Below the pieces are notes generated by a model. The model was not told the origin of the DNA. It was given only the letters and a program-made list of their open reading frames with translations, and made no database searches. Shown here in pieces: positions 3,349-30,900 of a stretch of DNA of 64,000 nucleotides. How positions within the stretch are numbered: position 1 is the stretch's first letter; each line of letters starts with the position of its first letter. Source of the DNA: Pocillopora damicornis (Eukaryota); assembly GCF_003704095.1 (NCBI RefSeq), contig NW_020845410.1, forward strand, positions 496,001 through 560,000, in the 5' to 3' direction. A program made the translations under genes and the position numbers.

Positions 3349-6300
3349 TCAACTTTCTGCTAAAGGAGGTGTCATCTCCAGGCTTGCTGCAAGTCGTGTG
3401 CTGAGAGCATTAATCTCCTCAGCTTTGTAAGCAAGCTCTTGCTGCAATTCAGTTAGCTCTTTTACACGTGTTTCATTCAAAGCTGTCTCATTCAAGCGTG
3501 AGCTCATCTCTGCTGTTTTTAACTGCAGTCTTTCATTATCAAGCTGCACTGTCTAAAAGAGAAAAAAACAAGTTATTTAGAAATGAATGCTCTTGACTCA
3601 AAGATGAAATATAAGGATTCAATTTTGGAGGCCTCCTGGTGTGCAACTGCCCCAGCTTCCAATTGCCACATGGAACAATAAAATCTACTTGCTACTGAAC
3701 ATATAGCTGGGATACTCTGCCACTAATAGCTTGCAATTAGTCCCCTGTTTGGGTCACCTTCACCCCTAAGGATGACTAGTATCTAATTTCTCTCCAAGTT
3801 ATCACTACTAAATTGAACATAAGGCTCATCAGAATTGTTAGGAAATGGTCGCAAACTTGAAAAGCTCTTGATCTCTCACAAAATTCTAATTTTCAGTGCC
3901 ATTGGGAAAGGATGAAGAACAGAATGGATAATAAACATGCTGGCGTTAAAGTTAAGATTGAAAATGAAACGTCTCAGATGGAAGAAAAGTGTGTGAGGAG
4001 GTTGAGCCATGAGCTGATTGAGGATTAAGGTGTGAGTAGCTCATCACATGCTACACATCATTTCATCCAGGGAGTAGTCCATTTCATTGATTTCATAACC
4101 AACCTGGTTCTGGTTTGTGAGTTCTGCATTTGCTTGTCTCAGAGAGGTGATTTCCTGCAGAGTAAAGAAACAAAATTGGTATAAATAGCCTTGTTGAACT
4201 GCAAAAGGTCACTTCATGGTTAGGTTTGACAGAAACAGAACATGCTTCATTGTACTACATCTGGATAACCATGCTTGAGTAAACAGGCAGCATGCTGTAT
4301 TCTGACAACATGCAGCGTCTTGCTTCTCTCACCTCGTCCTTCTGTCTGATCATGCTCTCAAGTTGAATCACACGGCCATCCAGGGTGAGTTTCTCTTGTG
4401 TCAGGGAATTATATTTCTCACTTACTTGGTCAGAAGATTCTAATTCATGGACCTTTCAAAAAAGGAAATACATGTGAGCTAGCACTTAAAAATGTCTCAG
4501 CTATTAGACATCAAGTTATATAAGTTTTCTTGTGAGAATATGGAAAATATACTGATAAAAATACCTCAATAGTGATATCTGCACTATATTAGTTAATAAT
4601 TAATAATAATAAAACTTAAATTAAAATTTCTTTCTATTTCATAAAAAAACAACAATAGAAACAACTCTGATACTTGGTAAATCACTTAGGACTAAACTGT
4701 ACATTTAAGTCCAAGATAGATGATGCTGAAACCTGAGACATAAAACAGACATTGTTATCACTTTGCTGGTCAGTGGAGCATTTTATAGCCTAAAATATAG
4801 ATTTTGGCTGACTAAAATGAATTTTAGCCCCCTTGCATGCATGGGCATCATTGTTCAGACTGTTTTGTTGTCATTTTTTTTCAGTTCTTATTTCCTTGAA
4901 GCCCTCTCAAGTGATAATTATAGTAGTAATGCAGTTTACACTCTTCTTGGGCTCTTCTCAGGATCACCTCGCAGCTCAGGCTAAAATGACTCTGATTCCG
5001 GCCCAAACCATATTTGTGCCCACGAAGTTTTGTCAGAAAAAATTGATAACATGAAAACTTAAAATGTTCTTAACATATTTTGAATAGCTCACCTTTTTCC
5101 TGAGTTTACCATTTTCTTCCTTGTAGGCATTCAGCTGCTTTTTCCACTCTTCAACATTAGTTGTGCTTTCCTGAAGTGCTGCTGTTAACCTTGCATTGTT
5201 ATTCTTCAATGTTGTCAGCTCTGTCTCCCATTTTTTAGCATTGGTTGAACTGCAGTAATATTTGTGGAGTTAGATTCATACACAGACAACCAGACTCCTT
5301 CATCAGAGCAATAAATGTGTTGCATAAAAAGGTTGTTTGTTTCACTTGATCAAAGTTTTGAAGTTTGATGGTGACCAAAATTTATAAATTTTTACTGTTC
5401 AGTTTTCATGTTACACTGCATTAAGTGTGTGAAAAATGCCCAACTTTCATTTCACCTACCTCTGAGCAAGGGCCATCTTCAATCTATCATTTTCATATTT
5501 CAATTGAGATTCGGTATTTCCAATCAGTTTATGACTGATCCCAGATGATTCTTTTGATTCATCCTAAAATGTAAAAACGTTTAAGATCATCTAAATCAAC
5601 TCAGCTGGACAAGAATGCTCTGTCATTACTTACAAGTTTACCTGGCCACAATGAACAACTTATCATATCTAGCAAGGGAAAGTTTTGTTTTCAACTTTAC
5701 AGGAAGCAAGATAAAGCTACATGTATACATAAGAACTTATTTTATATGGTGTACTTAGATCATTTCTGGGCACAAACAGAACAAACTTGAAAAGGCGACT
5801 AAATATGTAACATATCCACTATCCAAGAAAGTTAGACCTCTGTAAACTTCTGGCAAAATTTAGCAAGCACTTTGACATGCACCTCCAATCAAAAATTGAC
5901 TATACATCAAAATGAATAGAAAAGGAATCCTTTGACAAAACTTTCAGTAATACAAACTATGCCTTACTCAAATGGCTTCAATGTATCTTTCATGAAAACA
6001 ACCAAAATTTGCACAGTCATGCATCCTGCTTGGTGTATTAAAAAAGTGAGGAACGTAATTTAGAATTTGTAAATGTACCTTTACAGGAATATTCAGCTTC
6101 AATGATGCTGGCAAAGATACTTTTCTTTTAACAAACTTTTCCATTTTGTTCTTTCTCAATTGAACAGATGCATTAGGTAAGTTGAAGTGATTCAGAAAAA
6201 AAACCCGTATTTAAGATATGTGGCTTGCATGATGATATAGCTACTGAAATTTTTTATTATTTTTAGTAGTCTTGCAAAGGATCCATACAAAGCCTTTTGT

Positions 6301-9300
6301 TAAATCACCTATTATAACCAGTCATCTGTCAAAAATGACAACAATTACTGGCCTGCTGTTATTTACACAATATTGATATCAGAACATATACAAAGGTGTA
6401 TAAACCAACAGTTTTAACATACAGCTTATAAACTCTTAAAGTTTAGCACAGAAGTGTTACCCACAACAATCATGACTCGATCAGTAATAAGCTTAAATTT
6501 GTCTTTTTAAAATTATTATAATCTCTCATGACTTTTTTTAAACATATGCAGTGAAATCATGTTAAAGACTCAAGTAATTTATTAACAAAAATTTGCCACA
6601 TTGTATTTTTAAGTGAAAATAGTCACTGGTTTTATTATTACAACTGAGGGGGGTAAGCAAAGTTTTGCACTTGATATTAGCTTGGAGTCCAAGTAAGTAA
6701 ACTTTATTGTAAAAATATGGTTGTTATTCTAACAAAAATATGTCAAAACAATGACAGGTTAATAATTCATAAAACGTTATAGTAGTCAAAATGCTTTGAA
6801 GAATCACACTTAAATGAAAACAGCTTTCAGATCTTCTGTTTAGTAGTTTTCATTAGCACTTTGATGTTAATTAAGAAAACAGTCATTCAACCATGACTTT
6901 TAATCTGGCCAATATTTGATTCATTGGATGATAAAGTAAATCTCTGATTGAAAAGGATTCAGCTCCCTCAAAAGAAATGTTCAAAAATTCTATATCTGTA
7001 AGCAACCATCAACCTGCATTTGCAAGATAAAGAAAGTTCTTTAACATCTAAAACAGGTAAGAACCTTTTAAAAAGCACAAACAAGCCCTCCAGGTTAAAA
7101 AACAAAGAGATCACATCAGAATAGCACAAAAAATTGAATAAATCATTACATCTTAAAATATATTAACATTCAAATTTTAACATTGATGGAATCCCCTTTT
7201 AAAACTCTGGAATTCTCAATTCTTCAAGCACTCAAAAACAATTCAATCCTGGTGCCCAAAATTTGATTCAAGCTGTGCATACAATGGCCAACTTCTTACA
7301 GAAAGCATACAATTTAAAGCAGATTAACATACCAGTGTTTTTAGACATAACCTGAAAGTCACAAAAGAAGCCTAGGTGATTTAGATACTGCTGATCAGAA
7401 ATTAATCTCATTTTTCCATTATTTAAGTATCATTTAAATCAGTTTTCAAACAATGGGACATCAAAGAAAAATTGCTATTATCAAATTTCAGGACCCTTAA
7501 TACAAATTTGGCAATGAGTTCATGGCAAACTTAACAAAAGGAAAAGGAGTGAATTTGGAATTCTTTTTGGTTAAAAGTTTCTGTAACCCCACATATTTTT
7601 GCCAGATTATCTGATCACTATTTGGCAAGATTGATAAATATATTACAAACAGAAGCTTTCTGATAAAAATATTATCCAAAAAATTAAATTGAAGGGCATC
7701 TTTTAAGTTACAGTGACCACCTAGCAAGGAGGCAAATGGTTTACCAACAAGGTGAATTATGCCTAAAAATAATACATTACATATAAATTTTACAGAAAAG
7801 AAGGGTAAAGAGAGATTAAAAGTTTTTTTTTTTTAAATTTGTAATGCACAAAATACTATTTAAAGTAGATGTGATGTGCGAATGTTCCAAAAATTTGGAT
7901 GTGAAATGGGTTCAAGATCCTGCTTTGCTGCCTCTTCTAACACAAAAATATTTGTACCTACCTCACCACTGCTCGCAGATGAGTTACTTTTTAGTGATGG
8001 AGATTTGTGACCAGCGCCAGGTGTACTGTGAGGGGACTCAGTTGTTCCATTTACTGATCCACTTGAAGTGCCATTAGTAGTAACGGCGTTAACAGGTGCT
8101 GCAGGAGAATTGGAGTTTCCACTGTTGTTGCTCACAACTGTTTTTGTGCCACCCTTAGCTTCTTTAAACTTCTCTGCAAACTAATTGTTACAAAAGGTAA
8201 AAGTTAAGACTTAATATGAGAGCTGCAGCTGAAAGCTTTAATGAACAGTATTACAGCCCTTTGCTTCAAAGCATGATTGGGCAATCTATAGTCAGAGTTT
8301 AAACTTTCATTCCTGACTTCATTCAGTTTGTTGAATGACTTGGTACCCCCATGGTTCCAATACGGGACTTTTCACTCCTAGGAGTGATCACTAAGAAATT
8401 TCTCCTTACAATCACTGCATGTTGTCAAGAGTAAAAGAGATGAGAAGAAAGAAAACTGACTGCAATAAAATACCATCCTGCACAGAAGTAATAGCTTTAT
8501 TCCAAGCCACTTCTTGCTAAAGAAACCAGAAAAAGATTCAGAACTTCTGCAGCATTGTATGCCGAGTTGACCTTCCAAAGTGGCAGTTGTGAAAACTCAA
8601 ACACATATAATAGTAAATTACACTATGGCTTTTACTTAGAAATCTAAAGCCAAAAAAAATGGGAAGCAGACTTAGTTTCCCTAACCTTGTTGAGTTCAGC
8701 TTCTGATGGAAATCCTAATCCAAACACAGTGTTTGCCCTGGGATCTGACCACTGACCAAACTTCTGTGATGTCTTAGTAAATGTCATGTTTGCTAATACA
8801 GTACTGTTGATAATTGCCTGAAAAGGAATAACAAAAACCTTTTATTATCTTGGCACACCAAAGTAAAACCTGAAACAGAATATTGATACTCTATGTCACA
8901 TACAAATCTACTTTCCTATAAAATCTCCCTGAATTCTCTCACCAGGAAGGAACATTTGATAAAATTTGCCTTTGATGGGTTACGACATGACACATAACCT
9001 TTCTTCAAGAAATTCATCAGTTTGAGCATTTGGAAGAAAAATATATAATAAGGTAGTTAAAGGTGCTTAAATTAGGATCATAACACCTGTGAGGTTTGGG
9101 AGGGGGGCCTATCATGTATTTGTGTCCTATGGGTTGAGGAGGTGGAAATTTTCCTCGTTTGTTTTTACTTGAAGATATGTATAAAAATATCCATTGAAAC
9201 TAAATCTAGCCAGGTTGTCATGACACACAAACATTTTCAAATGAGCCCTCAGGTTATGCTATTTGGAGTGTCATGTGAGTAAATTTCATCAACTATCACA

Positions 9301-10644
9301 CGAAAAAATACCAAATAAATCATTACTTCAAAGGAGACAGTTTGATTCAGTTTCCAGTTTCCAGTAATGACCAAAAGCAGCTCAATCAATACAGTATTCA
9401 CACATTCATAGTTGAAAACATATTTGACTTCAATTTTGTTAACATCATAAAAGTGCAAAAACGATGACAATTTACAAATAACTGGCTTCATCGTTATCCT
9501 CGTCAAACATTAATTTACAAATTTGAGTTCACATGGAACGTTGTACCTTGTAAAATCAATACGCACATACATTAAAAATAACCAAAAAGTCCATTGTGAA
9601 GTAAATTAGTGGAAAAAAAATGAAGCCTAACGCACAATTAATTTTAAAGCAATAAGCTCAACTTTTCGTTTCCGTTTTTTAAAAATTTTCAATTCAAAAT
9701 CGTGAAACCGTAACGTAATAAAATGTTTACATGCCGAATTTTATTGTTCCATTCATCATCAAGGCTTCAAATGAGTTGATAAATTACCTTAACTCCCAAT
9801 TTTTAATTACGCTGTTTTCTCAAACGGAGAGATGAGAGAAAAATTTATGCAAGCATTAATTCATAGACACACGACGTCTACATGCAAAATAGGCAAAAAA
9901 AAAAAACAAACTAGCCTTTGACAAGGCTTCTTGTTACGCATTACATTTGCTGCACTTCAGGAATGCATAAAATTTATTTCCTTGTCGAGTGATTACACTA
10001 AATTTACAAGATTACAACTTCAAAAAGCTACTCCAAAGCGCTTGTTGACTAGCAATCAAAACTTCTGTATTTTTTCTGAAAATATATAGTTTCAGTCGGG
10101 AGACAATTAATTGTGGGACACTTCAGTTCTGGCTAGTTGCCATATTGTTCGAAGCGACTAAACTGACTTCCTTCATAACAGGAAAATACAACAAAACTTC
10201 AACCAAAGAAACTTCCTTTGTGAAAACTTCGCACCAAACAGTCTCCAGCAATAATTGTCCATGATTAGTGAACAAGAAATGACTGGGATTAACAAGATAT
10301 CACAACGCAGTTGTTTCTAAGAATAGCGAATAAATAAAGATTCACTTGATAAACACAAGGCGACCTATCTCGCGAGAAACGCTATTTTCTCACCTTCGCG
10401 CCATCAACAGAAATGATTCGGTGTGTTCCTTGGTTAGGATCATAGTAAAATGATACAGTTACCGCCTGCTTGGAACACGGTAGCCAGCTCTTTTTCGTTG
10501 CAGGATCAATCTGGAATACATGGGCCCGTGTCGAAAATACCGGTTGCTCCCTGAGGAGGAAATACATCGATACGAAATCAAAATATACTCCCGTTTAAAT
10601 TATGACCACTTTCTGAAGTAAAAAAAAAGACCAGTTTACCCCAT
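3349..10644 (-). CDS. HOMER: Homer (N-terminal class II EVH1 domain, C-terminal coiled coil), 382 aa, 9 coding exons
   Basis: Exons 10640-10644 (ATGGG), 10394-10550, 8686-8817, 7962-8180, 5460-5563, 5093-5249, 4333-4452, 4104-4154, 3349-3552. All introns GT-AG; total 1149 nt in frame. Translation [24 protein letters not shown]...[24 protein letters not shown]...[26 protein letters not shown] is diagnostic of Homer. Confidence 0.96.
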
Positions 10645-10742: not shown

Positions 10743-10755
10743 GTGTCTAGGTAAC
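10743..10755. promoter_or_regulatory. RFX X-box-like element upstream of the proximal Homer start
   Basis: GTGTCTAGGTAAC about 100 bp upstream of the ATG at 10644, followed by a second half-site AGCAAC. Confidence 0.35.
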
Positions 10756-12414
10756 CGCGCCAGCAACTTGGATTCCACTTTAACGGATGTTTATAAATTT
10801 AGGAGTTTCGAAATATTTTAGGAAAAGGACATCAACTTAGCAAAATCAAAAAGAAAATATGCAAATTTAACTAACTTCTAAACTCCCTGCTTTTAATTTT
10901 TCTCATAAAAGCGAAAATTTTTTTATTACAAATGCAAAAGATTTAACCTGTGATAATATTTATTTTTCCAACTTTGCAGCCAAATTTTATATTATTTATA
11001 TTGTGTGTAAGCAAAGGAACAAAACACAAAAGCTTTGTAAGAAGACCGACAACAAGTCAGAGATAAAAAATAGCCTCACACGAGAAAAATGACGAAGTTA
11101 TTCCTAATAAAAATGAGTGCTTTCCTCTCTTTTTTCGCAGCTCTTGGTCATAAAATATGATTTTCTCGAAATTCACACGAGGGAAGGAAATTACTCGTTG
11201 ATATATATTGGAATTAGTTTCAACATTTTTCAATCAATGTCTGTCAGGAGAACACTATAGAAAAGGAAATAAAGAACTTATGACCATTGAAAATAGACGA
11301 GAATAGAAAATGATTTTTTAAAAATGATAAAATTCCCGATTTAGTTTTATATAACGTAGCCAAGATTTTTTTGGTTTCGACAGTATATTTATCTACTGTG
11401 ATATTTTTGACAACCTTAATGGCAACACGCAAATATTGCAAAGGCACTGAGAGAGATAATTTAATCTTTACGCTACTATTGTGACCTCCAGCGCTGAAAA
11501 CACTTAATACTTTTTACGTCATTCAACTCGAGTTGTAGATGTCATTATACAAAACTCTGAGCTAATATCTGTGACCAGAAGACCAGTGTTTCTCCTTTTG
11601 AGCTAGTGTCTATAACTAGGAGACTTGTGCTTATCGAATTTGAAGCGTACCTTCGACTGAAAATTGAAGAAAATTCTTGAATTATCAATCGAGTTGAGCT
11701 GATTAATGGTAGAGCTGAGAACTTATTTTAAGGCGGCACGGAATTCTTTTGAATTTATAATCATTTTAATCGTTCCCTAATCAATCCGTATTTATCTGAG
11801 GATCAATTATACTTATCAAATATAATATTCAGATCGGTATCTCTACGAATTAAGTAATGCGATCTCAACCGCTGCATGTTTAAAGCTATATTTTAAAAAC
11901 AAGGCTATTTTGAGTTTTGACTGAAGTTCGCAGAAACTGCAAGTACCCAACCTAACTCAAAAATAGTACACTTGCACAATTCTAAGGCTAAACTAGCTGT
12001 GTTGCCCGGCAGTCAACCAAGCGGTTGAGAAAGTGTGGAGTACTTCATTTTTATGACTGAACATTATGCAAAATTGGTAATTTAAACAAATAGAAAAACT
12101 TTGAGTTGAGCGTCTGTGTGCAATTTAAAATGGAAATCAATCTGGCTCAACCCCAATCTTTTCTGTTCAGCAAAATAACAGTTCTCCAATAACGCAGCCT
12201 GTTTAACCAAAACAAATCGTAAAGACGTGACCTCAACCATGTATACAGTCGAAAGAAACATTTTACCGTCGATAGAAAGGTGCAAGTTTGCAAGTATGTG
12301 AATTTAACTGACCGGTGCCAAAAAAGCAAACAAAAACTGCTGGAACTCATCGTAAAATACCAAAATTTAGTGGGTAATCCCACCAAACAGGACAAAAACT
12401 TATCTAGTTCTTAC

Positions 12415-12548
12415 TCTGGTCTTGGAAGATTGTGCTGGAAGTCCATGGCTGCCCCATTCAAATCCGTGAATTGGCTGGGAGGGTCGAACACGATTTCCAA
12501 CGGCTCCTTGTGCGAAAGACTCAAACGCGAGCGAACTTGTTTAAACAT
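12415..12548 (-). CDS. HOMER: Putative alternative first coding exon of Homer (44-aa N-terminal extension containing PPSQF)
   Basis: CAAAATG start; 134-nt open frame MFKQVRSRLSLSHKEPLEIVFDPPSQFTDLNGAAMDFQHNLPRP; donor GA|GTAAG in phase 2, the same phase as the canonical ATGGG| exon, so it joins exon 2 (10550) in frame. Confidence 0.65.
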
Positions 12549-13360
12549 TTTGACGTTTTGGCCGGCTTTTTTGTGTAATTCAGATTACTGACGGCGTTCA
12601 AAGCAAACAGTCTTTTTGTATTTGTTTCCTTAAACTGAAATTTTTGTCAATCAATCTCTAATGAGAGTAAATGATACTCTTGTGAGCTTGAGTCAGCTAA
12701 TGCTGTTGTTTAGGAGTTGAAAAAGTTTCGGGCAACTTTTCTCAAATTTTTCAAGCGTCGTCAAGCGACATACCTATCATTATAACTCACTTAGCTCTCT
12801 GTTAAGCATATAAACAACTCAGACGTGCGTTAAACAGTGCATGAAACGGAAGGGTCATTGAGCTGCTGGAATTCTTTTGTTAGATGAATAAAAGAGATTT
12901 CGCAATTCATTCGTTTAATTACCATAACACAAAAAGACTTATCAACAACTCTTTCAATATCAGAAAACAACCCCTAGACGAAGCAGTTCAGGTTTGCATG
13001 CTCGAAAGCTTTCATCTGCCGACGTGTTTAGTGATACAGATAACACGCATTTTTACAGATTATTGCGTCAGGGCATAATTTTCTGTTAATTTCTAATTTT
13101 GTTTTTCTCTAAGCCTGGAAGGAAGTTAGGTAATGGCTTTGGATTTCCTAAGCGACTACCCGCTGGTCAAAAGCCCCGCAGAAACTTTGTCTTCCGTGTT
13201 TTGTTGCTCATGATAAAAAACATTAGTCACAAAAAATGAGAAAAACTGCTTTAGTTTTCTGCTAAAGTTTTTCAGTGTGCAATAAATGCCGTATCAACAT
13301 CCGTTGAAAGTAGAAAATGTTAAAGGGACCCAAACCGTTTCAGACCTCTCTCGTGCATAG

Positions 13361-15383
13361 TCAAAGGACTACAAAGTCTGGGTCAAATCCTTCGTGTGAT
13401 TTATTTACTCGGCTTAATGGTCTGCTGGTTTCCAGGATGGACTCAGGTGGCAAGGTGTTTCCTGTAATAGTCTTGGGAAGTAATTCCGAAGGTAACAGCA
13501 GATACTTCTTGAAAATATGCCGACCACTAAAAAAAAGAAACTATGAAAGATAGTTTTAAAAAAAAGTTATGGATATTGACCTGCGGAGTAATTTTCACAG
13601 AGTTTTCGCAAACTTCGGCAAACCGTCAAGAAACTGTCTAGCGAAGAACAAGTAGAAACGGTCATGGACTCAAGCAGCCAATATACCAAGAAACAGTTGA
13701 AAAAAGAGCAAAATAGAGGCAAGCTGAAATGAGCCAGAAATTGAGAGTAATAAAAATTATCGAGATGAAAGAAAAGCAATTGTAACACTGTAGCTTATGA
13801 ACCTTAACACCGTCAAACCTCAAACATTCAACTATTCATCTCTACCCTTATTTCTATTCAAACCGTCTTTGCATTGATTTGAGCACGGATACAGAGTTCT
13901 GTATTTCTTACAGATTGCTATAGTGTTGGCACCTTGTTCCAGCCCTTTCTTCATTGCAATCGAGTCAGGGCGCTACTTACTGATGCAACCATGCAACGGT
14001 AGCTCGAAAATGCATACAGGACGCACAGGCATCAGCCGGCCACTCACACCACTTAAAAATGGATTCCACGTTGCTGTGCGTCTGTTCAATGATAGATCAC
14101 AGATGACGTCAAACTGAGTTAAGAACCGAAACGTGGCAAACGAGGCGCAGCTAAGTGTGTCAGTAATGTATTTATTGCATTTAGACGTCATCTGTAGTCT
14201 ATTACGTTAGGGAAACATGGAATCTATTTGTTTTAGAAGGTAAAAAAACAAAATGTAGTTAATAAAGACGCCATCTATGCGTTTGACCTCCAATAGATCA
14301 AAGTTAAAGTAATGGGCTCCTGGCAAGAACCAATTAAGAGGCATCGGTGTATAATTCAGCGTATCATATCACGTATAAATCATCATATCTTAACCATGTC
14401 TCTAAGCCTTTAATGTAGAGAATGGAAACTATATTCTTCTTCACTTTGCAATATATTTTGGGGAGGTTCGAACCGCAGGTAAAAATAGCATCGCCTCCCC
14501 TCCCCCCACAGTCATACCTTAGACGCCTTGGAAATTATATTCTTGCCCCCTTTGCAATATATCTCAGAGCACTTCGAACCGTAGGGGAAAATAGCATCGG
14601 CCTCCTCCTCATCCCCCTTCCCCTCCCCCCACGATCATTCCTTAGACCCCTTTTACTCTGCTCTTTTTTCTTAACAGGATCACGCACAGAATCGCGTGAG
14701 AAAGATAATTGATGTCTTCTCCTAATTAATCAGAAGACCTGTTCCACTTCAACTGTGTTTTTAGTCACGTATACTGATGTTTACTAAAGTGAATAATTCC
14801 GGGTCCAAGTTAGAGGCTGACACAATTAAAAAATATATCGAAAATCGTCGAAAAAAAGAAGAATAAAGAGAAAGAACATTTTTTTTTTGTTTTTCAAGAA
14901 TGTATAAGAAAAAGGAGTGCGTTGTAATCGTCAGAAATGACTGATATATATTTGAGGGACGAAAATATAGAGGATATTACGCAGGGGAAGGAGATTTGAA
15001 TTTTATGTTTGAGTGACAAGAACAATATCTCGTGATTGTTCCCGGATGTCGTGGTCGTATTGAAAACACTCGTACCTTGAGTCGTTACGCGTTCATTTAA
15101 ATTTTTTTAACACTGAAAACGTCCCCAGATACGAGAAAAAAAAATGGCAAAAATTACCTAAGCAACCGAATTAAAACTTACTCCACTGCAAACTTTCTTG
15201 GCTAATAGAGCAGTAAATTGCTTTCATTGATCTTATTCCACATCTTTTCAACATGCCCATCAAGACGGCTTCTGTAAGGCTCTCAAATATACACCTGTTT
15301 ATATTTACATGCACTGAATCTTTCTCCTTTGTTAAAGTTACCCTCAAATTAAGAAGAATTACCTCGAGTAAGTGGGTTGATTT
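13361..15383 (-). CDS. Possible unannotated small-exon gene, 5' end not identified
   Basis: Phase-compatible candidate exons 15363-15383, ~15182-15271, 14739-14773 (weak donor), 13981-14081, 13361-13526 read EINPLTREAVLMGMLKRCGIRSMKAIY...SIFKWCEWPADACASCMHFRATVAWLHHGRHIFKKYLLLPSELLP...DPDFVVL*. Most have good pyrimidine tracts and GTAAG/GTAAT donors. No homolog recognised. Confidence 0.35.
14444..14650. repeat. Two-copy imperfect direct repeat (~105-bp period)
   Basis: TTTGCAATATAT...TTCGAACCG...AAAATAGCATCG...C-rich...CCTTAGAC occurs at about 14444-14528 and 14551-14650. Confidence 0.8.
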
Positions 15384-16644
15384 CTGTTTTGTTAGAATTT
15401 TTAAAATAACTGGGCTCAAGGGCCGTTATCAAACACTGGTCCAATTGAGAATTGAATAATTTAGGTGATTACTCAAGAAAAATATTATATCGAACCATAA
15501 AGGAAAGAGATATGTCACCATGTAAATGAAACTGAAAGTCCTGAGACATAAAATTCCGTGGCACACTCAAAATTCTTAAAACATTGCCCTAAAAACATAT
15601 CTGTGTTTTACCTATGTGTTTTCCTACTAACACACGTTAAACAGGTGTTACGGCAGCTGTTGTTTTAAAATAAAGTTTATATATTTCTTTAAAAGTGAAG
15701 AAATATTTTCTTGATATAAAGATCGACAGTGCAGAGCCACACGAATATCTTAAATCAAGAGCCCCGTTCCCCGAATATATTTGAATTGTTTCCTGAGTAT
15801 TCCGATCTCGCTGGTTAATCGATTAATTTTTGCTGACATTTTTTGATAAGACATTATTTCCGCTCTTCATTTTAAATATTGCTCAATTTTTCAATTGACC
15901 TAATTTTCCTTTTTGCTTAATTAATTGGTGGAAGTTTCATCCAGGTTTTTCTGGAACGCCATTTCTAAACTGGCTTTCTTTAATTTCCACTGAGGGATGC
16001 ACAAAAGATATGCAGAAATGACGTAGTGTAGCTATGCTAATATAACGATCTACAGAACATTAACTTGTAATAAATCTGAATGTTAAGGTCTGAATAATCA
16101 ACCTTGTATAATATTAGCCTTTTTTTTCTTTTTTTTTTTTGATAATGGAAGGCCTTTATCTGCATGCTCTTGATCTGTACATTATTGTTTGATCAGCTTT
16201 AAGGTCCCGGGGTCCGTTTGTAGTGATGTGGCAGCAATGTTTTCAATTAAAAATAAAATCTCTACGTCAGTGTGAACTGCCAAAATTAAAAATTGTATCA
16301 GAAAACACATGCACAGATAAGTAACCTGGAGACGATGCAGCCTAAATGAGTTTGTAAAGCAACGAATAATTTATCTCATGAAGAAATTACATGATGAAGT
16401 GGTAGGATGTCTTAGTGATATTTTGAATCTCGAAAAATGCAGAATATTTATTATAATCAAAGCTGTCGACTACAGGGTCGGGTGGGAAGGTAGAATGTGT
16501 GGCTTATTACCCACAGGTCACTTCGATCTATCACTATTGTAAACTGGTCAACACGGCCATATTGGCTAAACAGGAAAGGAGTTAATGGTACTTTTCTCGT
16601 GACCGGCCGTCATCTCTGCTTTTTTAGTTCTTTTTCGGTTGAAA

Positions 16645-18909
<2,265 letters not shown>

Positions 18910-21979: not shown

Positions 21980-24900
21980 TTATTTCCGTCTTATCTTCAT
22001 AACTACGGGTCCGTATGGCAATTTTCTAATCAGCTCAAGTACATCCACATTCGCCATGTATGCAACCTTTTGTCCATTCACTTCAATGATTTCGTCCCCA
22101 GGCTTCAGAGCACCACTCCGCCCGGCCACGCTTTCCTTGAACACATACCTCACATGAATCGGAGCATCACCATAGAGCGAATCCTGACCCCCACCCAAAG
22201 AGAACCCTAATCCAGAGGCCCCCTTTTCGAGCGTTAATTCGGTCACAGAGGGCCCATGAGGCACTTTTTGCAGTCTTATCGGTCCACCATTGGAGAAGAA
22301 TCTCTTCTTTAGACGATCGAAGGTGGAGTGTTCTCCATTATGTTTCACCACATCTAATGGAATTTTCTCTAGGGTTGGCGGTGTGGTATTGTTTGAGTTG
22401 GCCATGTTTTTCTTCTTAGTCAATTCTTCCTTCGTAGGCCAAGCATCCGAATCAGAGGTAATTTCTTTGTTAGGACTTTTGTTTCGAAGAAGAGTCATCG
22501 TTTTAGATTGTTGTCTGTGTCCTAATGGCCGGCTTACTACAAGAGTAACCCGCTCAGGAGTGTTTTTGAGAAGAGTTAAGGCTTCTAAATTTGTCAATCC
22601 TTTGAAGGACTTGCCGTTGACAGACAATAGGATATCTCCCTTCTTGATATGTCCATTGTCAGCTGTGACACTGTTGGAGAGAATTTGCCGCACCTAAAAA
22701 AAAAGAGACGGTCGGAAAGAGCTCACGATTTTACTACCACATGGCTTATAGAGCTAACTTAAAGCACTCTAAGGTTCCAAAAAATTTAATTATCTCATTG
22801 ACAGTCCACCGTGTAACAAAGAATGACAACGACAAGGCTTTGTAAGCTCTAGCTCTAGCTCTAGCCGGCGCCCGCCAGCACGTCACTCGCACCGAGACAG
22901 GGAATAACGGAAGAGGGAAGGAATGAATTAAGACGGTAAAGTGTCACACTCTGCAAAAGGAGACATAGAAAAGAGTGGAGTATGGAAAAAGGTCGATAGA
23001 AGGCGGGCGTGAGGAAGGGAACACAGTAACGAGAAAAATAAGGAGATGAGGAGGAAGGAGTGCTGTAGGAAAAGAAGAACCAGAAGAGCCAGGGAAAAAA
23101 GAAGGAGAACGATAAGGCTGTTAGGGAGGAATTAGAAAACCATATGCGAGAATACAGAATTATAATAAACAAGGCGTTCATGAGGAAGCAACGAACAAAG
23201 GTTAACGTGTTATTCAGATTGGCAAACAAAAGTTTGCGAGTAAGAAACAAGAAAGTGCGAGATGAGAGGGGTGATACTGGGAACGACATTGATACTCACC
23301 ATGATGTCATCATGAGGTGTGTCCACTCCCCCAGTGACACTCAGTCCCAAGCCTGCACGGCCATTTTTCAAGAGTTCTACGGTAAACACCTTAGCGTCGT
23401 CACTGCTGACCGCCCAAGTGACGCTCTTAGTGACAGGTTTGACTTCCTCTTCATCCTCGGTTGTCGTGGAGTCATACTCACCAGGAATACCATCAATAAT
23501 AGTCACAGGAACGTCATCCTGACGAAGGGTCAGTGTCGGGCTCTCTGGCTCCAGGTAGGCGGGGATGTAGTCATCAGAATCATCAAACGAACCAGATGGA
23601 GAGGCTGGAGAGGAATCATTATTAAATGACGCCCCAAAGGACGAAAGGCTTATCAATGACTTAGGGCGTTGGCCCCTGTCAAGAGGTGGGCTTAGGGGCA
23701 GATCTGACGCAGTCTTTGAAATTGTGCTCGATTCACGGGCGGAGGATACGATAGGTTCTTCAGCATCTGGTACACGCCTTCCCTCTGCCACTAGTTCAAT
23801 ATTATCACTTCCATTATCCTTCTTTCTTGCCACAGTGAGTTTCACCAGGGGTGGTGTGTTCTTAAGAATGTTCAAAGCCTCACTATGAGTTACTCCCACA
23901 AGACAATTATCGTTGACCTGTAACAGTTGGTCTCCAACTCTGAGTCGGTTGCAGTTGGCGGCTGGAGAGTTGGGCTGAATATTTTTTATATACAGCATGC
24001 CTAGATGGGTGTCCAGACCTCCCACGACCATTAAGCCAATAGATTTCTGTTCTTTAAGAAGCTGTAATCAAGGAAAAATAAATCAATTAGCCATCTTCGC
24101 ATTGCTGATTTAAAAGATTGAACAAAGTTAGTGTCCGTCATTAAACAACGATTTCATTTCCCTAAGGTAATAGTTTTGCTTTATCACACACCAAGCATTT
24201 TCCACGTTCACAACACAAGAAAGAACGTAATTAAACCAATCCCTACTTTAAACTCGGAAGTAGTTAAAAGCCATTTTCGAGTTGTTGTTTCGACCCAAAA
24301 TTCACTCCTTCCATCCATTACCCTGTCACTCCTTCTTCCATTCCTGTTAACTTTTTGAAAATAAGATTTCGATCCACGTAACAGCAAAGATTACTTTTTG
24401 TGACAAATTTAACCTTTACAACAACGATACTCACCTGCACCTCTAGTATTCCTTCCTCAACATCCTCCTCCTGGTTCCTGCTGTCGATAAGCTGCTGAAG
24501 GTTTCCGGTGTGCCAGTAATCCGCCTGCCCAACTTTTCCTTCAGACGCTTGACCTGTGAGTGAGTCGGCAAGAAGCTGAGGTAAAGAGGACGACCTTCTA
24601 CGGAAAAAAGGAGGGGGACGCTTGGTAACAGGAGTTGATCGCTTCGTCTCCTCATCAATAATAGAGGGACGCTGCATAGGAACGTCTCCAGCGGAGAAAC
24701 TAGCACTTCTAGCCACTTTATTACCATGCAAAGGTTGGCCCGAATATTCTTGAGTCGAACTGCAAGTATCTTCCCATTCAGAGGAAACGTCTGAACTATC
24801 GAAGTCGTCGGTACTATGTGCATTCACCTCATGACTGACATTCTGTGTAACAACTGGTTCTGCTCCTTGTGACAATTGTGGATAATCATTGTATTCATTC

Positions 24901-27900
24901 AGGAGAATTTGTGAAGGTGATGGATCAGTGTTTTGTTCCCATATCTCAGGGTTATTCAAATCTTCATTTTTGTCAACTTCCTGAGCGTTCTGTCTTGACA
25001 GTGTAAGCTTGTAGGGGTTACCAGTAGTGTTCAGGTTCAGGTCAGTAGGGACTGGAGGTAACGGTTTGGTTTTTCGAGGCTCTTCATTGTGCAGTGCTGG
25101 CGCAACTACATCATAAGTGTCCTCTGCAGCACCCTGTTCCGCTGGAAATACGTCCTCTCGTTTTTTACTTTTACCGAGAACAGGAATTGGAGGTAAAGGT
25201 TTGGCAGTAGGTGCACCAGTTGTTCTTGGCAGGTCTTCGTTTCCACAATCAATGCTCTTGTTTTGAACAAGCAAATCTATGGGCGGAGGTGCTGGCTTAA
25301 AATTAGGAGGACCCGGGGATACGGGAGAATCTGATGTTTCATCTCCTGTGGTATCATTCTGTACAGTGGCTGGCTTCAAAGATAAAGGCGGTGGGGGAGG
25401 TTTGAATCTAGGAGGACCCGGTGAATTGGGACAATGTGGTGCTGTACTAAAGTCGTCCTTCTCAGCAAGGCTTGAACTGGCTTGTACTGCCAGCGGAGGT
25501 GGTACAGCCTTAAAATTTGGTGGACCAGGCGATGGCAAAACATTACTGTCCTCAATGGCTTTACCTTCAGTGTCAGAGTCAAGATCCTCAGTTATTAATG
25601 GTGACGTTTTCATTCTTTCTTTGCTAATTTTCTGTTTAAGTTCGTCCATAGTTTCTTGTTGTTGTCTACTGTGGGTACCGACAGACTTCAGGAAAGTGGG
25701 CTTTTTTGGAACAGGAGGTTTATAAGGAGATTTCGTTGGCAAGTTATCTTTGACGGCTTTACGCTCCTCATATTCAGCTGTTATCAAGGCGCTAGTGTTC
25801 GGTTGTTTTTCACGTTTCGGGGAAGGTGGCCTGTTTGCAAGGGATGTATCCACACCCGCATAAACATGAGATTCCGTCACATCATCATCGTCAGTGAACA
25901 AACTTACACCTTCAATATCAATTTCATATTCCTTCTCTTCATGATCCAAATCAGCATTCTCACTACAAGATTCATCTTGTTCTATTGAACTGCCATCTTC
26001 AGCTTGTTGAAAATTTATTTCATTTGTCGCCACTTCAGGCCTCATGTCTTCGTCTTTTGTTGTCAACACACCAAATTTGTTGTTGTTGTTCCTTTCTACA
26101 TAGTTTTTCATCTGTGTGGATAGATCACTTGATTTAAAAGTAAATGGCAATGTTTGTGAGAGAAATTTAGTTTCATTGAATATTGGTTTTTCAACGTCTT
26201 CATGAACCGGGTCTTTTACCCCAGCATCTTTCTTTTGTTTACCCAAAGGATCCTTTTTTGTCGTCGGTGGAGGGAGAGGTGGACTGGACCTCCTTGATCT
26301 GGAAAATAATCCTCTTGGAGGTGACACAGATCGACTCCTGTTCTCTCCATCCTTTGGCTTATCTCGGTTCTTGCTTCTACTTCTACTGCGAAAGCCAAAC
26401 AGCTTCTTGGTCCAGGATCGCGATCTTTCACGTCCGACAGGATTGGCGTCAAATGAGGTGTCCGGTGATTGCAGATGGTCGGGATCAGCTTTTTTGTCCT
26501 TACCTTTATGACCTCTTGAGAACAGTTTCTTCGATGTTTTCTCCTTCACTGGAGACGATAGTCTTTCTTGTTCTTTCTTGAGTTTCTGCGTTGATTCTTG
26601 TGGCGGAGAAGTTGCTCTAAGTTTAACATCAGGCTTAGAGGGAAGCACAGGTATACCCCCTGGAAGTGATTTTCGAGGGGCGCCACTCGTCTTACCAGGA
26701 GGTCTTGAAGGGATAGGAGGAGCTGGCCTCCTTTGCTTAGTGAAATTCTCTGCCGAATCTTCACCTTTAGTTGGTTGCTTGAGTAGCCTATCTTTTGGTT
26801 TGAAATGTGTTGCGTTGCTTTCTGTTCGCCCTTTCAAATCAAGTGGAGGATAATGAAGTTCTGACTCTGGATTTGCTTCTGTCGAATTGATCGACGAACT
26901 TAAGTTCATGGGTTCCAAATCAGGTATTCCACCAGAGCCCGTGTCTGAAGATTCCTCTAGTGATGAAAAGGCGATGTTGGTCTGGCCTAGGCCTTCTGTT
27001 GACATCATAGAATAGGTGTGGCCATGTGTCTCTTGTGACGTATTAACTGTTGATCCTTCCTTACTTTGTGAGGATTTTGTGTCCAGATTTGACATTTCCG
27101 TGGACAATGATGGTGGCTTGGAGGATGATGAGCTTCCTCCTTCACTGTCCTGCTCACTGCCAGAGTGTGACAAATCTTCTAAAGTCAATATCTGATCCAA
27201 GAAAGCAAGCTCTGCTTCTGCTGCTCCCGCCTCTGACCAAAGCTCCATTTCTGGAGGCAAAGGGGGTGGGGACATTGCATCAGACGAATCTGTGACCGCA
27301 ACTTCATCTTCACGAGGAGTAACATCTTGCTTCAAGGAACCGTCTGCTGCGTGGTCTGTCTCGTGTACAACAGGGAATTTAACGGACACGCCTCTAAATT
27401 CAGGTATGGATCCTTCAGCCTCCATCTCTATCACATTTCTTCGAAAAGACTTCTTCTTTTTCTTTGGAGAGGATTGAGATGCATTCACAGATGATGATTT
27501 GGCTTTATCTTCTTCAGAGGCTGAAAGCCCTGGACTGGTTTTAACTTTCACAGCTTGTAAACCATCTCCAAAACTTTCCAAACTTTCCATTGTGAGAGGT
27601 GAAATCCTCGGTGGAGGGGGGGCTGGGGGTAAGCTTTCCATGTCATCTTCGGGTGGCTCATCATGCGTCAATGAATGGGCTTGATTATCATCGCTTGAAG
27701 TTATAGGAGCAACAAAATCCACCTGACTTGGGTAAGCTGGCGATTCGTGGAGTTCATCGCCTTTACCAGAGGAACCAGATTGCTCCGATGTTTTGCTTCC
27801 TCTTTTTGATCTGATTGGCAAGGATAATGTCCTTTTCTTGGAATTCTTTCGTTCTGGTTTGACAGGGTGTGGTAGAGGACTGGTGATGTGTGTAAGTTGT

Positions 27901-30900
27901 GTCTCTCCACCTGACGATGGGACCGATTTATCAGATTCAACAGACCAGCTAGATGACATGTTGACTTGAGAGCGAGGTGGTGGAGGTGCAGGAGGAAGAC
28001 TCGACATGTCATCATCTAAATCATCCAGTAGCTGAATAGGCGCGTCACTAAAAGCATCTGGTATACCAAATATGGAAGTATGTTCATGAGAGGGGGAAGA
28101 TAATCCAGATTCTGCCATAAGATTCGTGCTTTCAAGATTTGGTAAATGACTTGATGATTCCCGATCAAACCAACAAGAAAGAAGTGGCGACGAAGAAGTC
28201 GAGGAAACTGTGTCCTGACTAATAACTTGTCTTCTTGGTTTAGGAGGTGGCGGACCTCTAGGTAAGCTTGGGAGACTTTCAAGCTCGTCATCAAACAAAC
28301 TTGGTGGCTTGATTGGACTTTTATCCTGTCCATTCCACGACAAGGACTCCAAAGCAGCTGCATCTTGCACAAAAGAATTGTTCATGAGCTCCAAGGGTTC
28401 TTCTTTATGAATGCTTTCGTTTCCTATATTATCTCCAAACAATCTAGGAGGTTTCATGGGTGCCTGTTGTTTTAAGTTCTCAGTAAGCTGTTTCTGCTTT
28501 TCTTGTGAACCGGATGGTATATCGGAATTGCCATTAAAATACTCCTTCTTCTGAACAGGATATGAGGGGGGTGATTGTGCATCTTGACTGAATAGCTGCG
28601 GAGGCTGTGGTGCTACTGTGTTTGCTTCCTCCACTTCAGAATCGAAAGATAACGCAGATTCAAGATTTTCGTCAACAAAGTCCTCAAAATTGGCTGGTGG
28701 GTTCAAAGATAAGTTTTCTACAATGTCTTCCGTTAACAGTTCAGGTACTTCACCTGAATAATCTTCTTCTTCTTCTGCGTCATCTGTCGGTAATGGTGGA
28801 GGAGGACTAGATGGAGGAAGATCATCAAATTCAGTTCCTTCCAGTTCACTGCCTTCGCAACCTTCTGCTGCAATTAACTCATCAGTAAGCTCTTGGGACA
28901 GAGTTATAGAAGTAACACTTTCTTCAGGATCTGGTATATGATTTGTTGTAGGTAAGTTTGAAACTGGTCCACTAAAAGTTTTTGATGTTTTCAGGGAGAT
29001 AAGCTCACTAGAGATGTCCACCCAAGGTGTGTAGGCTGCCACACTTGACAAAACATCTGGTACAGATTCCCGGTCTGCTGAGCTCATTTTGTCAGGTATC
29101 TCGTCAAGTTCACCCTTTTCCTTCTGAGATGAGACTTTCTCCTCAAGTAATTCTGTCGGTTTCGGTGGTTTAGGTCCGGCTTGGGCCACAATTCTCACAT
29201 CTCCCCTTGGGCAGTTCTTGATCATATTATGGACATCTTCAAAGGCCATTCCTTCTAGGGGGGTCTCGTTAATGGACAAAAGAAAATCTCCAACCCTGAA
29301 ATGAAAAGCAGACAAGACGCTTTCGTAACCTACACGTGCTAGTATATGATATAATGCAGGGGTGAATTTCCGCAGTACAGTGATTTATCGATATCCTAAA
29401 ACTACCTATTTCTACCTTGAGCATTCACAAACCATTTTCACCTATCGCAAGCAAGTAAAGGGATTTATCTTATTTTGCTTTGTTCCTGCTGCAAAAAAAA
29501 ACGTCTTAAGTAAGCAGAGAAAAGCAAGCAGCAAACAGTGCGCCATGTGAAACAAAACAAATTATGATAAACAGTCCTTCTTCGGTTTCTCATTATTCTT
29601 ACCTGATATTCCCATCTTTTCCTACTAGGCCAAATGATGAAACATCTGACACAATGACTTTCCCCTCCTCTGTTAGGTCCACTTTAAAGCCAAGGTTTCT
29701 AAACTTCTTCTGATAGATAATAGCAAATGGAACATTCTCATCTCTTCTACCAGCAACTGGTTTCACATCAACGTCAATTTTGTGTTTAATGATAGATGGT
29801 GTTGTCATTTTCTTCGTATTGGGGCCTTTAACTGGGGAAAGAAGACCTTTATCGACTCCAAATTTAGGTTTAGCTGAAAGTTTTTCCAAATCCAGGTTTT
29901 GTTGTTCGTGGCCACTTTCCTCTGCAGGAGATCCTGTACTCGTCTCCAACAATTTCTCTGAAAAAGTGTCCTTTGTTTTCATAGTCTCTGATGGTAAACT
30001 AGGTTTGCAATTTCCTGACAACGACGTAGCTTCTGTGCTGGTAGTTTGTCCAGATATAAACTCATCATCGTTTTCGTTTGTATTCAAATCGTTGCAAGCA
30101 TCAAGCAAAGACTGAAAATCCCAACCCGTACCCGTTTTATTACCACGGAAACAAGCTTGGTTAAGACTAATACTGGATTCTGGTGAGATCTCGTCGTCTT
30201 GTATGTTGTTGCTTTCATGGCGATCAGCCCTGAAGGGGTCTTGCTCCAGGAATTCCTTCATTCTTGGACTAAGAATAGGCGGTGGAGAAACAACGGGAAT
30301 TGGTGATAAAGGCAAGACATCGTCAATTGGTGGTGGAACTGGTGGAGGAGGGGGAGAAAACGATGGAAGAGCAATAGACAGATCGTTCTCTAAAAGATCG
30401 TCTGCATCCAGTAATGGCGGGGGTGGCGGTGAAGAAGGCAGTTCTGGTATATCCTCTTCAATATTTCTATCTTCATTACTTCTTGAATGAGGTTCATCTC
30501 GACTTTCTAATTTTTTCAATTCCCTGCTCCACTGAGACTTGCTAGGAGATACAGCTTTTTCCGCGCAGGGCAACGTTTTGGCCTCTTCTCTCCTCGACGA
30601 CGATGATAGCTCACCGTGTGTTCCGCTGTCTTGAGCCAAAGTATAATTTTGACCAGATGATAAATCGGACTTCCATTCACTAACAGGACTTGAAACTCTC
30701 TCCTGAGGATCTTCTCCTTCCCGTAATATCACAAACGTGACAAGTTCGGTTGGCTTCTTGAGCAACTGCAATGCCATCGAGTGAGTGACACCCTTCAAGG
30801 ACACGCCATTTACTGAAACAAGTTTATCGCCAGTTTGTAGCTGTCTATCTTGAGCACACACCATACCAGATTGTAGTCTACGAATCTGGAAAAAGGCCAG

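Follow-up and report, generated by a model that had tools for sequence, protein, structure and literature searches.

An open frame of 134 nt on the minus strand upstream of the Homer gene of Pocillopora damicornis raises two questions: whether Homer can be started from a second first exon, and whether the residues encoded there provide a ligand for Homer's own EVH1 domain. The locus was analysed in a window of 64,000 nucleotides (contig NW_020845410.1, positions 496,001 to 560,000), and all positions below refer to this window. The preliminary description had reported the 134-nt ORF with an AAAATG start, a phase-2 GA/GTAAG donor (the slash marks the splice boundary) and a frame that fits Homer exon 2, and all of its coordinates and numbers were found to be correct. 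By sequence inspection, the frame at 12548-12415 (-) was initiated by ATG, comprised 44 codons plus GA, and was closed in phase 2 by the donor GA/GTAAGA, of which the GT occupies 12414-12413. The start at 12548 has the context AAAATG, and the A at position -3 was kept in relatives.

The downstream gene was identified as Homer from two exons encoding the EVH1 domain. Both matched Pfam WH1 PF00568 (E = 2e-10 and 7e-7), and their best PDB matches were EVH1 chains of Homer2, Homer1 and Homer3, including 1i7a and 1ddv (E = 1e-22 and 3e-14). Alignment to these chains showed that the coral EVH1 domain keeps the pocket residues F14, I16, W24, F74, Q76 and G89; the ligand pocket of Homer is formed by F14, W24, F74 and G89 (PMC11237882). 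Further downstream, minus-strand ORFs at 5033-5209 and 3349-3549 were rich in E, K, L and Q, and one of them gave no significant match to a Homer coiled coil in a comparison with the PDB.

The canonical Homer start, ATGGG/GTAAAC at 10644-10638, ends in phase 2 as the 134-nt exon does, so that either can read in frame into exon 2, which is preceded by the acceptor ...CCTCCTCAG. In the predicted join, GA and G are combined to read ...PRPE-EQPVF, in frame with Homer exon 2. The ORF occurred a single time in the 234-Mb assembly, and a Pfam search of its peptide returned no match. On its other side a divergent GOLPH3 gene (Pfam GPP34) begins on the plus strand at about 16640, which places the exon in the Homer-GOLPH3 intergenic region and on the strand of Homer. 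The coordinates of all features are collected in Table 1.

Table 1. Features of the Homer 5' region in the window, with the evidence for each
Feature	Position	Strand	Evidence
Coding part of the proposed alternative Homer first exon, 44 codons + GA	12415..12548	-	ORF conserved in other corals; variable sites in codons 1-30 split 6/2/20 over codon positions; dN/dS low
PPSQF codons, PPxxF core of Homer ligands; extended to PPxxFxD by D at 12462-12464	12468..12482	-	P23, P24, F27 and D29 invariant in 16 variants; preference from PMC11237882
Splice donor GTAAGA (relatives: GTAAGT)	12409..12414	-	Kept in relatives; 12414 is the last base of six contigs, two or more of which are RNA
Transcribed leader, directly adjoining the coding part	12549..13526	-	Contigs L003-L008 colinear
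Optional GT-AG intron of the long leader	13527..13932	-	Skipped in L006 and L007; retained in L003-L005
Most upstream transcribed segment seen	13933..14105	-	Contigs
Conserved non-coding block, candidate promoter or 5'UTR element	12809..12968	-	0.67-0.81 identity to four relatives; periodicity absent (16/19/16)
Canonical ATGGG Homer start; donor GT 10639-10638	10640..10644	-	ATGGG/GTAAACTG invariant in five species
Conserved 21-nt box, candidate promoter element	10743..10763	-	Some 100 nt before the canonical ATG
Homer exon 2, encoding the N-terminal half of EVH1; its acceptor fits a phase-2 donor	10394..10550	-	WH1 match; Homer2 residues 3-54; F14, I16 and W24 kept
Exon with C-terminal half of the EVH1 domain, boundaries approximate	8647..8787	-	WH1 match; Homer2 residues 65-101; F74, Q76 and G89 kept

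Conservation of the ORF and its donor in related corals had been set beforehand as a check of the proposal, and the ORF, its ATG, the GTAAG donor, the phase and the synteny were all kept. Orthologues were sought exhaustively at the protein level and by two word searches, and were found in contigs of other coral samples as products of 45 residues, or 44 in one lineage. The alignment of 16 variants (A2) contained 22 invariant columns, namely M1-S7, S10, K14-L17, V20-P24, F27, D29, G32, M35 and E45; the first 30 residues were conserved and the last 15 were variable. One coral lineage carried a clean in-frame deletion of one codon, so the exon measured 134 or 131 nt and its length modulo 3 was kept.

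At the nucleotide level, the variable sites in codons 1-30 among seven species were distributed 6/2/20 over the three codon positions (chi-square p = 7e-5). The dN/dS values in the same codons and species were mostly 0.03-0.15, with a maximum of 0.19, and dS between the window species and the other corals reached about 1 or more. CCT, CCC and CCA were interchangeable at both proline codons of the motif described below. The flanking controls were without periodicity, with 18/14/17 in the 135 nt upstream, 16/19/16 in a conserved upstream block and 19/26/21 in the 135 nt that open the intron. The shortness of the frame and the lack of a Pfam match could raise the suspicion of a chance ORF within promoter DNA, but this possibility is refuted by the codon-position bias, the low dN/dS, the 16 orthologous variants that preserve the frame and the conserved donor, and was rejected. 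We consider it almost certain, on this pattern of substitution, that 12548-12415 is a real, conserved and translated exon. The peptide was kept across corals as deeply diverged as dS of about 1, which argues that it does something.

The donor was conserved together with the coding sequence. GA/GTAAG(T) was found at the same place in the genomic copies of relatives, the one exception being variant P0011, in which GA/GTGGGT has lost the in-frame TAA and retained the GT. Apart from P0011, the seven bases GAGTAAG were invariant inside an otherwise variable peptide tail. This arrangement allows the frame to be read in another way, as a stand-alone micropeptide of 45 residues or an upstream ORF that ends at the TAA within GTAAG and acts as a free decoy ligand of Homer or as a regulator of the transcript. 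The frame indeed ends GAG-TAA in all but one variant, so unspliced RNA would yield just this peptide, gene callers give a product of 45 residues, and unspliced RNA forms exist, as the leader intron is kept in L003-L005. A stop codon alone, however, could drift among TAA, TAG and TGA, and the invariance of GAGTAAG in the variable tail at dS of about 1 is better explained by a donor; P0011, which has no stop and keeps its GT, argues in the same direction.

In the contigs of relatives, the order was GPP34 (divergent), the ORF, and the EVH1 exon 2.0-2.9 kb further, the latter with 90-92% protein identity to that of the window. The GOLPH3 (GPP34) gene of the window, at 16639-18909 (+), is divergent from the Homer upstream region, and this arrangement was likewise kept in the relatives' contigs. 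The canonical start was conserved alongside the 134-nt exon, with ATGGG/GTAAACTG unchanged in five species, which means that both first exons are maintained, as two alternative starts. A choice between two Homer starts is plausible from this comparison. A 21-nt box, CTGGCGCGGTTACCTAGACAC (10743-10763, -), situated some 100 nt before the canonical Homer ATG, was nearly invariant in five species and may be a core promoter element or a binding site for a transcription factor.

Evidence of transcription was obtained from assembled sequencing runs. The exact product of 45 residues was present in six Logan contigs from six runs (L003-L008), with 97.6-98.8% identity to the window over a colinear stretch that reaches up to 14105 and down to 12414. 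L006 and L007 skipped 13932-13527, an interval with GT..AG on the minus strand, and joined its flanks as ...GGAACAAG/TGGTCGGC...; the 406-nt leader intron was retained in L003-L005. The GT-AG splicing of two contigs on the minus strand indicates that they derive from RNA of Homer's strand. All six contigs stopped at 12414, the G that is common to the unspliced continuation (GA/Gtaag) and to exon 2 (GA/Ggagc). In a second species, a JGI contig ended at the homologous base and another contig of the same sample entered the intron, and DNA-derived contigs of relatives passed the homologue of 12414 into the intron. A k-mer assembly breaks only where two continuations diverge at the next base, and the ending of the contigs at 12414 therefore points to a second continuation and to a donor that is apparently used. 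There is thus good indirect evidence that the donor at 12415 is used and that the next exon begins with G, as exon 2 does. The micropeptide explanation has to meet this point too, since the breaks of six contigs, of which two are demonstrably RNA, fall at the base shared by the donor and require a second continuation; on balance it is improbable.

The junction itself was sought in several collections. None of the exon-covering contigs crossed 12415/10550, and word searches found no protein joining the exon peptide to EVH1 among products of 25-79 or 91-290 residues. Among 50%-identity cluster representatives, an exhaustive search for proteins bearing the junction turned up nothing beyond an orthologue of 45 residues and a TPR protein unrelated to the exon, and the word searches and cluster members gave only genomic ORFs or ORFs reading through from upstream. 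A scan of metagenome contigs for the exon found eight loci, zero of them spliced, and a look-up of an intronic ORF for the unspliced branch gave no record.

The exon might instead belong to another transcript, being either spliced to a different acceptor or included in a gene, non-coding or unannotated, that lies upstream and overlaps the 5' region of Homer. The reach of the contigs to 1.5 kb upstream and their many upstream ATGs would suit such a transcript. Yet the interval from 12414 to 10770 contains no further block that is conserved and exon-like, and the next downstream acceptor on the same strand that accepts phase 2 is that of Homer exon 2. The contigs also end at 12414 and not at 12415, which means that the next exon starts with G like exon 2, and a purely non-coding role is incompatible with the coding constraint. 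This explanation was judged very improbable, and the exon very probably joins Homer exon 2. The alternative Homer first exon of the preliminary description was in this way supported as a real exon, transcribed on Homer's strand, under coding constraint, with contigs breaking at its donor.

The leader in the exon-covering contigs was about 1.1 kb long and contained 18 upstream ATGs, which makes it a poor template for translating the ORF. A start site nearer to the ATG than this leader is therefore assumed. Such a site is made likely by the last 222 nt before the ATG, which contain zero upstream ATGs in the window, and by the conserved non-coding block at 12809-12968. This block (-) showed 67-81% identity across five corals and is probably a promoter or UTR element; upstream of about 13000, conservation of the leader was absent in relatives. 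The frame upstream of the ATG was open for about 115 codons in several relatives (P0011, P0017-P0019), and the window species has stops there. These in-frame codons were rejected as coding sequence because codon periodicity was absent. A two-codon mini-ORF, ATG ATC TGA, was located 40 nt before the main ATG in relatives (L002-L029) and was absent in the window species.

The peptide encoded by the exon contains the sequence PPSQFTD at residues 23-29, and most relatives have PPSGF[IV]D. The core P-P-x-x-F was present in 16/16 variants, with SQ, SG or GG at the x positions and T, V or I after F, unless that residue was deleted. D was located two residues after F in 14 of the 16 variants and directly after F in the other two, both of 44 residues. 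The question whether PPxxFxD is selectively kept can therefore be answered in two parts: PP and F were invariant and the D two after F was nearly so, and residues 1-30 were conserved as a whole. The earlier placement of the PPSQF codons at 12482-12468, about 18 residues before the EVH1 domain, was confirmed; 18 residues separate the motif F from the first residue of exon 2, and the first EVH1 strand is about 20 residues away. The core of Homer1 ligands is PPxxF, with a relaxed form [PIALV]Pxx[FWY]; D or N is preferred two after F, and Leu at a distance of 2-3 residues ahead of PP (PMC11237882). In the coral peptide, F and V occupy the positions of the preferred Leu. By chance, PPxxF appeared in 0.5% of 44-residue stretches in the six-frame translation of the window and in 4% of shuffled versions of the peptide.

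On the present evidence it is fairly probable that the PPxxF motif, as predicted, engages a Homer EVH1 domain. A flexible tether of about 20 residues corresponds to a millimolar local concentration. The affinities reported for PPxxF ligands are micromolar, for example 15 uM for one peptide (PMC11237882). At such concentrations relative to the affinity, the pocket would be largely occupied by the tethered motif, geometry allowing.

The peptide of a real alternative Homer exon could also do another job, such as targeting, carrying a modification site in MFKQVRSRLS or binding another partner, in which case the PPxxF would be incidental or would be there for some other proline-recognition domain. 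Conservation spans the whole of residues 1-30, beyond the motif, with the first ten residues under as much constraint as the motif itself, so that the constraint may serve another function; the silence of Pfam on the peptide and the occurrence of PPxxF in 4% of its shuffles are also in keeping with such a role. Against this, the invariant PP and F, the variable x positions and the near-invariant D reproduce precisely the degenerate pattern of the Homer ligand motif, and with the motif tethered beside an intact Homer pocket, some occupancy would be hard to avoid. We regard another job for the peptide as unlikely, although by no means negligible.

PPxxF sequences were also observed elsewhere in the window. 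Two genes from Homer, at 24318-29315 (-), a PDZ-containing protein has an open exon of 1665 codons in which several PPxxF motifs precede acidic residues (PPANFED, PPQLFSQD, PPRLFGD and PPSLFDD). No homology between the Homer exon and this PPxxF-rich PDZ protein was found beyond the motif.

The reading that we prefer, with a probability of about 0.5, is that the locus contains a conserved alternative first exon of Homer whose tethered PPxxF self-caps the EVH1 domain. According to this model, transcripts begun upstream of 12548 would use the GA/GTAAG donor, and the alternative exon would most likely replace the ATGGG exon before exon 2, by which the N-terminal MG is exchanged for 45 residues. 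The first 30 of these would form the conserved part and the last 15 a variable linker. The tethered motif may occupy the pocket of the EVH1 domain in its own chain, or of that in a neighbouring chain of a Homer multimer, and as a competing pseudo-ligand it would be expected to raise the threshold for outside PPxxF partners. The choice of start site, presumably at a separate promoter, would then decide between an open and a self-capped Homer. We tentatively propose, with less confidence than the model of self-capping itself, that the Homer of stony corals is self-capped in cis, or acts as ligand and receptor at once so that multimers are linked without Shank, and that start choice sets the valency of the scaffold. 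The present sequence evidence does not discriminate between autoinhibition in cis and cross-linking in trans.

Homer is, to our knowledge, a core scaffold of animal signalling complexes with one known switch, the truncated Homer1a. If the model is true, self-capping would add to Homer1a another and independent means of tuning Homer, and a postsynaptic-density scaffold of a non-bilaterian animal would have a regulatory logic unlike the Homer1a mechanism. It would also be a natural test case of how short linear motifs turn into built-in regulators. For genome annotation, a 134-nt coding exon missed by ORF-length filters would alter the N-terminus of a well-known protein, if it is joined to Homer exon 2.

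The coral motif can be compared with the ligands of mGluR1/5, Shank, IP3R and drebrin (ELM LIG_EVH1_2), with which it shares the PPxxF core and the D two after F, PPxxFx[DN] (PMC11237882). In those systems the motif lies in the partner, whereas the coral motif is predicted in Homer itself, N-terminal to EVH1, with F/V in place of Leu. The preliminary description had held that no Homer isoform with an N-terminal PPxxF was described; a literature search for such an isoform found none, and this part of the statement stands. Self-ligation as such is less novel, as partial precedent is provided by the SPLTP motif of Homer1 in crystal 1i2h (PMC12954376). In that article, which cites Irie 2002, the internal P-motif SPLTP is described as binding a neighbouring EVH1 in the crystal, with binding in solution unconfirmed, and an intrachain contact with EVH1 is judged sterically possible and discussed as potential self-regulation. 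SPLTP and the coral motif are alike in being Homer's own proline motifs, the EVH1 contact being seen for SPLTP and predicted in coral. They differ in that SPLTP is C-terminal to EVH1, is not a PPxxF and is present in all isoforms, whereas the coral motif is a consensus PPxxF, is N-terminal and would be restricted to one isoform. The crystal contact of SPLTP, as reported there, nevertheless gives Homer self-contact a precedent.

Isoform choice is known to change the bridging of partners in the short isoforms Homer1a and Ania-3, and Homer1a loses the coiled coil by alternative 3' processing. The coral case would be similar in that isoform choice alters partner bridging. It differs from Homer1a in the manner proposed, since there the coiled coil is lost at the 3' side, whereas in coral it would be retained and the pocket capped via an alternative 5' exon. 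Autoinhibition by tethered pseudo-ligands is established for the NHERF1 tail on PDZ2 and for Src SH3 on its linker, and we know of no description of such a pseudo-ligand for the PPxxF pocket of a Homer EVH1. In both known systems a short linear motif of the same chain competes with outside ligands, and the coral case is proposed by analogy with them. The coral Homer would thus unite two known kinds of arrangement, an alternative first exon and a tethered pseudo-ligand.
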